Positions 20,080-25,240 of a DNA stretch of 64,000 bases are shown piece by piece. How positions within the stretch are numbered: the first letter of the stretch is position 1; the number at the start of each line of letters is the position of its first letter. The DNA is from Antechinus flavipes (lineage: Eukaryota), in assembly GCF_016432865.1 (NCBI RefSeq), contig NC_067400.1:618760001-618824000 (forward strand). The letters run 5' to 3'. The position numbers and the translations under genes were made by a program. The notes under the pieces were generated by a model. It did no database searches and was not told the origin of the DNA. It was given only the letters and a program-made list of their open reading frames with translations.

Positions 20080-25240
<5,161 letters not shown>

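Follow-up and report, generated by a model that had tools for sequence, protein, structure and literature searches.

Insulin/PI3K-Akt signalling, and likewise cAMP/PKA signalling, is classically connected to GSK3 through phosphorylation of Ser21 in GSK3-alpha and of Ser9 in GSK3-beta, and the alpha site's own contribution is still debated, given the mild effects of the knock-ins in mice. The GSK3A locus of Antechinus flavipes raises the question of whether this site has been lost from the alpha isoform of a marsupial and, if so, whether the loss is genuine and what it would do to the enzyme. We analysed a stretch of 64,000 nucleotides from assembly GCA_016432865.2 (hereafter the window), in which a preliminary description, made from the letters alone, had read Ala at the position of Ser21 and had proposed that this GSK3-alpha may be uncoupled from insulin-dependent inhibition. 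We consider it likely that the gene is a genuine GSK3A in which T-S-S-F was replaced by T-T-A-P on the antechinus (or dasyurid) branch, with an alpha isoform that would stay active under Akt/PKA signalling as the outcome.

The GSK3A model was assembled from motif anchors and splice sites (Table 1). The spliced model has 11 exons with GT...AG at every intron and encodes a 516-aa product, and an in-frame TGA lies two codons 5' of the start ATG at 20080. The gene called by NCBI begins at the same base, and its longest product, at 540 aa, is matched by the 516-aa model plus the 72-nt alternative exon; the public annotation thus uses the same first exon. The Dromiciops model carries the 72-nt insertion too, as do isoforms X1/X2 of Notamacropus and Macrotis. 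In the spliced model, the kinase core is complete, with the Gly-loop, VAIKK, HRD, DFG, and the activation-loop Tyr, and the exon pieces match Pfam Pkinase. The pocket for primed substrates is intact as well and is formed by the Arg of FKNRELQ, the Arg of HRD, and the Lys of SAKQLV, which we take to correspond to R96, R180, and K205 of GSK3-beta.

Table 1 Features of the window, with positions counted from its first letter.
Feature	Position	Strand	Remarks
ERF-like terminal coding exon	14000..15545	+	upstream neighbour, same strand as GSK3A
GSK3A exon 1	20080..20470	+	ATG 20080-20082; 391 nt = 130 codons + 1 nt; GT donor
Degenerate Akt/PKA pseudosubstrate motif R18-A-R-T-T-A23-P-G-E-P27	20131..20160	+	orthologues: R-x-R-T-S-S-F-x-E-P
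GCG codon, Ala23, at human Ser21 position	20146..20148	+	
GSK3A alternative exon, 72 nt	20765..20836	+	between exons 1 and 2; AG/GT, phase 1-1 kept
GSK3A exon 2	21097..21284	+	Gly-loop, VAIKK Lys; ends KRFK
GSK3A exon 3	22004..22087	+	priming-pocket Arg (FKNRELQ)
GSK3A exon 4	22199..22309	+	hinge VLDFV; alpha-type VARHFTKAK
GSK3A exon 5	23452..23582	+	
GSK3A exon 6	23679..23785	+	priming-pocket Lys (SAKQLV); activation loop
GSK3A exon 7	23995..24092	+	
GSK3A exon 8	24169..24264	+	
GSK3A exon 9	24407..24593	+	
GSK3A exon 10	24985..25077	+	C-terminal tail; several antechinus-unique substitutions
GSK3A exon 11	25176..25240	+	ends at TGA stop
ZNF526 single coding exon, 609 aa	28357..30183	-	C2H2 zinc finger; name from other marsupials; downstream neighbour
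DEDD2-type gene, 335-aa product	33375..39239	+	DED + TRADD-like_N domains; after ZNF526
Minisatellite arrays, five places	9259-9388, 36739-37180, 40712-41137, 53251-54180, 61770-62117		

With exon 2 as the query, GSK3 proteins were retrieved at 94-97% identity. Exons 2-11 share 96-97% identity with the annotated GSK3A of Macrotis, Trichosurus, Dromiciops, and Notamacropus, about 90% with monotremes, and about 89% with the fetched eutherians. The gene is of the alpha type and not of the beta type, as seen in the VARHF sequence, the long Gly/Pro-rich exon 1 that ends in SFPPPxVKLGR, and the alpha-type C-terminus, and exon 1 can be aligned end to end with the GSK3A exon 1 of other marsupials. The gene order in the window is ERF - GSK3A - ZNF526 - DEDD2, and a C2H2 zinc-finger gene likewise lies downstream of GSK3A, on the opposite strand, in Trichosurus. 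The gene in the window is the true syntenic GSK3A orthologue. A retrocopy or paralogue of GSK3A was considered and rejected on the basis of the synteny, the 11 exons that are all bounded by AG/GT, and the reproduction of the 540-aa NCBI product. The hinge sequence VLDFV, which is VLEYV in the literature, was dropped as an oddity of this gene since most of the fetched non-eutherian GSK3A sequences carry VLDFV.

Elsewhere in the window, a dispersed minisatellite family with a unit of about 33 nt (CCCCTGTTCTAAGGCCCCTCCCAGCCCTGACA) occurs in either orientation at the five places listed in Table 1, with 4 to 13 copies per array. Long CT-rich and AGAC/GGCCCAGACCCC simple-repeat tracts occupy 49871-51812 and 59226-60520, and the N run at 50379-50526 adjoins one of them.

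The codons of the N-terminal motif on the forward strand (20131-20160) are CGG GCC CGG ACC ACC GCG CCC GGA GAG CCG and translate to R18 A19 R20 T21 T22 A23 P24 G25 E26 P27. They match the preliminary description to the base, including its GCG codon for Ala23 at 20146-20148. The description had also stated that the acceptor Ser and the following Phe are replaced and that the RxR and EP anchors are kept, and the alignment with the orthologues agrees. Its count of four adjacent differing codons stands against the eutherian TSSFAEP and does not stand against the nearest marsupials (TSSFGEP), from which three adjacent codons differ. Compensating frameshifts were tried as another explanation of the motif and rejected, for the other frames give GPPRPES and DHRARRA and an alignment with substitutions only is the most economical one.

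At the position where the RxRxxS/T sequence near the GSK3A N-terminus calls for a phosphorylatable residue, the antechinus protein has Ala23, and the hydrophobic Phe at +1 of the acceptor is replaced by Pro24. Arg stands at -3 of Thr21 and at -2 of Thr22; neither Thr is in the RxRxxT register, as had been described, and the pattern R.R..[ST] is absent from residues 1-140, so that the first 140 residues of antechinus GSK3A offer no substitute site. A search of the 64-kb window for another first exon in which the motif is intact gave none. Two repeats were observed in and around exon 1. A run of 23 consecutive Gly codons (69 nt) extends over 20366-20434 on the forward strand near the end of exon 1; the terminal uninterrupted Gly run is at most 8 residues long in the other fetched marsupials, and the long Gly stretch of Macrotis is interrupted by Ser and Ala. 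Just 5' of the start codon, at about 19927-19985, lies a (GCCGSA)n hexamer repeat.

For comparison, GSK3A proteins were gathered with platypus (kinase region) and Trichosurus (N-terminal region) queries, and seven marsupial species were found. No dasyurid GSK3A was among the proteins obtained with these two queries, and an exact look-up of the exon 1 ORF (20080-20475, forward strand) in the protein collection gave no independent contig from Logan or any other source. Exon 1 alone, used as a query against a set of 5.8 billion proteins, gave no match; low-complexity Gly/Pro words crowded the list of candidates, and proteins of full length fell outside the length window. Exon 1 aligns without gaps across six marsupials with near-identical flanks on both sides of the motif. 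In this alignment, all five other australidelphians read SGRAR[T/S]SSF[G/V/L]; the motif is TSSFGEP in Trichosurus and Notamacropus, RARTSSFVEP in Vombatus, RARSSSFVEP in Dromiciops, and RARTSSFLDA in Macrotis. Since the other australidelphians keep SSF within near-identical flanks, the change is placed on the antechinus branch. Three adjacent residues are affected (Ser became Thr, Ser became Ala, and Phe became Pro), and relative to the nearest marsupials no fewer than 4 nucleotide substitutions, all in 20144-20150 (about 8 bp), and zero indels are needed. The Gracilinanus GSK3A model has a ribosomal-protein-like N-terminus fused on, presumably RPS19-like, and the part with the motif is absent.

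The comparison extends well beyond the marsupials. The comparison across marsupials, platypus, reptiles, and eutherians that the preliminary description had proposed finds Ser at the acceptor position in the five australidelphians, monotremes, reptiles, and eutherians. We then compared 105 fetched GSK3A sequences, namely those with RxRxxxF upstream of the kinase domain. The acceptor is Ser in 87 of these 105, which span Polypterus, teleosts, Latimeria, salamanders, reptiles, ostrich, stork, monotremes, and eutherians. Phe at +1 is present in all 105 sequences of this set, which was selected by RxRxxxF, and the frogs are included. The Ala acceptor of antechinus is unique among the sampled amniotes. 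Exon 1 identity among australidelphians is otherwise only 77-84%, and the motif is kept while the surrounding exon varies, which argues for purifying selection in most lineages.

The two birds of this set deserve a separate remark. According to reviews, birds (PMC7765659) or Neoaves (PMC10722388) have no GSK3A, and the annotated GSK3A of ostrich (Struthio camelus) and stork (Ciconia boyciana) carries an intact RxR[A/T]SSF. Part of the reported avian loss of GSK3A may come from older bird assemblies in which GC-rich genes are missing.

Is the assembly right at the motif? The A. flavipes assembly was made from 100x PacBio CLR reads with wtdbg2 and polished by Pilon with 50x 100-bp BGISEQ reads (PMC9290055). 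The true sequence could be T-S-S-F, with T-T-A-P arising as a clustered consensus error during assembly or polishing, and a possible route is that Pilon 'corrected' a GC-rich exon of low coverage with short reads that belong to a diverged copy elsewhere in the genome and were mapped wrongly. The motif comes from a single assembly of this kind (CLR, wtdbg2, and Pilon), exon 1 has a GC content of 81%, at which short-read polishing performs worst, and the scanning of very many windows favours rare errors in famous motifs. Moreover, the frame of the ERF terminal exon breaks near 14760-14764 (within 14690-14830, forward strand), where a TGA appears at about 14764, and the conserved continuation runs for more than 250 residues in the adjacent frame after the break. 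The simplest reading of this break, in a gene that is essential and otherwise conserved, is one missing base, which would be an uncorrected consensus indel in a GC-rich coding sequence. It lies 5.3 kb upstream of the motif, so consensus errors appear to exist in the neighbourhood of GSK3A.

However, the error presumed in ERF differs in kind from the change in the motif. CLR consensus errors are overwhelmingly single-base indels, as in ERF, and the motif differs by at least four clustered substitutions without an indel. The frame is intact through the whole 391-nt exon 1, including the 69-nt repeat of Gly codons, and the flanks of the motif match those of the other marsupials. No N run lies within 18 kb of the motif, the nearest ones being at 1381 and 50379. 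A nearby donor for a local template switch is also lacking; the search for a template-switch or micro-conversion donor of the changed 8 bp gave only two distant 11-mer matches.

The C-terminal exons bear on the same question. Antechinus GSK3A carries 7 lineage-unique substitutions; all fall in the C-terminal tail (24985-25240, exons 10-11), the kinase core has none, and the other marsupials carry 0-2 each. These exons are much less GC-rich than exon 1, and the 7 unique changes are an independent sign that the tail has really diverged; they are consistent with accelerated tail evolution on the antechinus branch. With these points on both sides, we regard an assembly or polishing artefact as unlikely, and the alpha isoform has probably lost its Akt/PKA inhibitory site in a real, lineage-specific change. 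We infer that the assembly is right at the motif, that the species is fixed for the change, and that N-terminal inhibition is abolished in vivo once the site is gone.

What would the loss mean for the enzyme? Akt, S6K, RSK, and SGK require Arg at both -5 and -3 of the Ser/Thr to be phosphorylated. The replacement of T-S-S-F by T-T-A-P would remove both the phospho-acceptor (human Ser21) and the Phe at +1, with the RxR and EP anchors left in place. Ala23 cannot be phosphorylated, and with no substitute RxRxxS/T, these four kinases would be left without a site. The phosphorylated N-terminal serine acts as a primed pseudosubstrate, which binds to the docking site beside the cleft of the active site and keeps primed substrates out by competition (PMC8508950). 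The antechinus N-terminus would be unable to form such a primed pseudosubstrate in the phosphate-binding pocket. With no acceptor and with an intact core and pocket, the expected product is thus an active GSK3 that does not respond to Akt-type input. The alpha isoform would then be active even when PI3K/Akt or cAMP/PKA signalling is on, and GSK3-beta would still respond. Such an uncoupling of the alpha isoform from Akt-type N-terminal inhibition would follow from the established pseudosubstrate mechanism.

The two Thr residues next to Ala23 leave room for another outcome of a real change. Thr21 and Thr22 might be targets of other basophilic kinases (PKA-, PKC-, or Aurora-type). The switch could in that case be retained and rewired from Akt, with Thr21 or Thr22 phosphorylated by a PKA/PKC/ROCK/Aurora-type kinase and the phospho-threonine, one or two residues upstream of the former acceptor, still docking in the priming pocket. 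R18-A-R20-T21-T22 does offer R-x-x-T and R-x-T contexts, a shift by one residue seems sterically plausible in a flexible low-complexity N-terminal tail, and the unchanged RxR and EP anchors could reflect residual constraint. The frogs, too, keep RxR...F despite the loss of their acceptor. However, neither Thr fits the need of Akt, S6K, and RSK for Arg at both -5 and -3, and the hydrophobic Phe at +1 has given way to Pro, which stands two residues past Thr22. Thr is found at the position of Thr21 in nearly all of the fetched orthologues, yet to our knowledge it has not been described as a regulatory site in any of them. A retained but rewired switch seems unlikely to us, and loss of the N-terminal inhibition remains the preferred reading of the motif.

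GSK3-beta in the same genome provides a reference for this loss. The preliminary description had called for a check of Ser9, and the antechinus assembly indeed encodes a GSK3B with the intact MSGRPRTTSFAES. Sarcophilus (GCA_902635505.1) and two more assemblies, GCA_048593235.1 and GCA_048593225.1, encode an identical GSK3B protein, and Sminthopsis crassicaudata is among its source names.

The alpha site has also been lost outside antechinus. The 18 acceptor-negative sequences among the 105 are all from frogs (anurans), and Ala or Val takes the place of Ser in every one of the 18 frog GSK3A sequences that were fetched. The acceptor is Ala in 7 ranoid sequences (Aquarana, Rana temporaria, Mantella, Pyxicephalus, and Hyperolius), which read MSGANRARPEAFGDP (RARPEAF), and Val in 11 hyloid sequences (Bufo, Hyla, Eleutherodactylus, Dendrobates, Phyllobates, Ranitomeya, and one Logan sequence), which read R[T/N]RSDVF. 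Frog GSK3A has an acidic residue at -1 and retains Phe at +1. The salamanders Pleurodeles and Lissotriton have an intact RPRTSSF. Among marsupials, the GSK3A of Monodelphis domestica reads GRTGTGSF, in which the Ser is kept and the Arg at -3, on which Akt-type kinases depend, has become Gly; the motif has here been eroded a second time among marsupials, in an independent event. Taken together, the losses in antechinus, frogs, and Monodelphis point to at least three independent cases of damage to the alpha-isoform switch among tetrapods. The antechinus case is less singular than the preliminary description implied, because the fetched frogs carry Ala or Val and Monodelphis lacks the Arg at -3. 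Our literature search found no paper on the loss of the acceptor in frog GSK3A or on repeated loss in tetrapods, and nothing relevant on natural loss of Ser21 or on Antechinus together with GSK3.

Recurrent damage of this kind may indicate that the alpha switch is dispensable where Ser9 of GSK3-beta is kept, in which case the motif could have drifted, possibly under GC bias, with no physiological consequence. The independent losses agree with such neutral erosion, namely Ala in the 7 ranoid and Val in the 11 hyloid sequences and the missing -3 Arg of Monodelphis, and so do the mild phenotypes of the mouse knock-ins. The minimum changes TCG to GCG and TTC to CCC both swap T for G or C, where the ancestral codons are those inferred from the codons of the window, and the rest of exon 1 is itself variable between australidelphians, at the identity of only 77-84% given above. 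On the other hand, the five other australidelphians show no variation in the motif, and it has been kept from Polypterus to eutherians. We hold neutral erosion to be a serious possibility that falls somewhat short of probable. It concerns the significance of the change and is compatible with our main explanation, in which the inhibitory site of the alpha isoform has been lost.

The possible consequences should be seen against the mouse data. S21A/S9A knock-in mice are born at normal frequency and have mild phenotypes, and a dramatic consequence in antechinus is therefore not to be assumed. In platelets of the single alpha knock-in, phosphorylation of Ser21 is absent and that of Ser9 in the beta isoform persists (PMC8508950). 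Mouse sperm function uniquely requires GSK3-alpha, and Ser21 phosphorylation shifts during capacitation (PMC6930163). In antechinus, males do not live beyond one mating season, and they die with metabolic dysregulation and with skeletal muscle that shows signs of insulin resistance; muscle insulin signalling is down-regulated in males at the die-off, and amyloid-beta plaques accumulate in antechinuses at the end of their lifespan (PMC9290055). Links of the GSK3-alpha variant to the die-off, the plaques, or sperm function are speculative. In the most far-reaching version, the loss would be fixed in Antechinus, and perhaps in dasyurids, and a GSK3-alpha beyond the control of Akt and PKA would contribute to traits that have drawn research to the genus, as part of a tetrapod pattern, with frogs and the opossum, in which the alpha switch is repeatedly dismantled and the beta switch is never touched; we think this very improbable.

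Whatever its consequence, a mammal that is naturally without the alpha site but has the beta site is a ready-made comparative experiment, and the same holds for the frogs and the opossum. If the sequence is confirmed, it gives researchers on GSK3 a cheap, testable prediction. If reads refute the motif, the case illustrates that a GC-rich first exon in a CLR assembly can pass for a functional change.

Antechinus GSK3-alpha can finally be compared with the known forms of the kinase. It is like eutherian GSK3-alpha (human and mouse, with Ser21) in its synteny block, its 11 exons, its catalytic and pocket residues, and the common MSGG...GRAR...EP frame around the N-terminal motif. The two differ in the acceptor (Ser to Ala), the -1 residue (Ser to Thr), and the +1 residue (Phe to Pro), and the antechinus protein further has a longer, Pro/Gly-rich exon 1, VLDFV in place of VLEYV at the hinge, and a diverged C-terminal tail. 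The GSK3-beta of antechinus is a paralogous kinase with the same pseudosubstrate logic; unlike the alpha isoform, it keeps the switch motif MSGRPRTTSFAES.

The mouse Gsk3a S21A knock-in resembles antechinus in having Ala at the same position of an otherwise normal kinase with GSK3-beta alongside. However, the antechinus form is a natural allele that also lacks the Phe at +1 and the Ser at -1, and the common double knock-in mouse is mutated at Ser9 of GSK3-beta as well, whereas antechinus keeps this residue. The GSK3A of neobatrachian frogs (such as Rana, Aquarana, Bufo, Hyla, and Dendrobates) shares with antechinus a natural acceptor position without Ser or Thr; the frog loss is independent and much older, is common to a large clade, and differs in that the +1 Phe and an acidic -1 residue are kept. 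Monodelphis is, like antechinus, a marsupial with a damaged Akt motif. In Monodelphis, however, the acceptor Ser and the Phe are kept and the basic determinant is gone, through an independent event on the didelphid branch.
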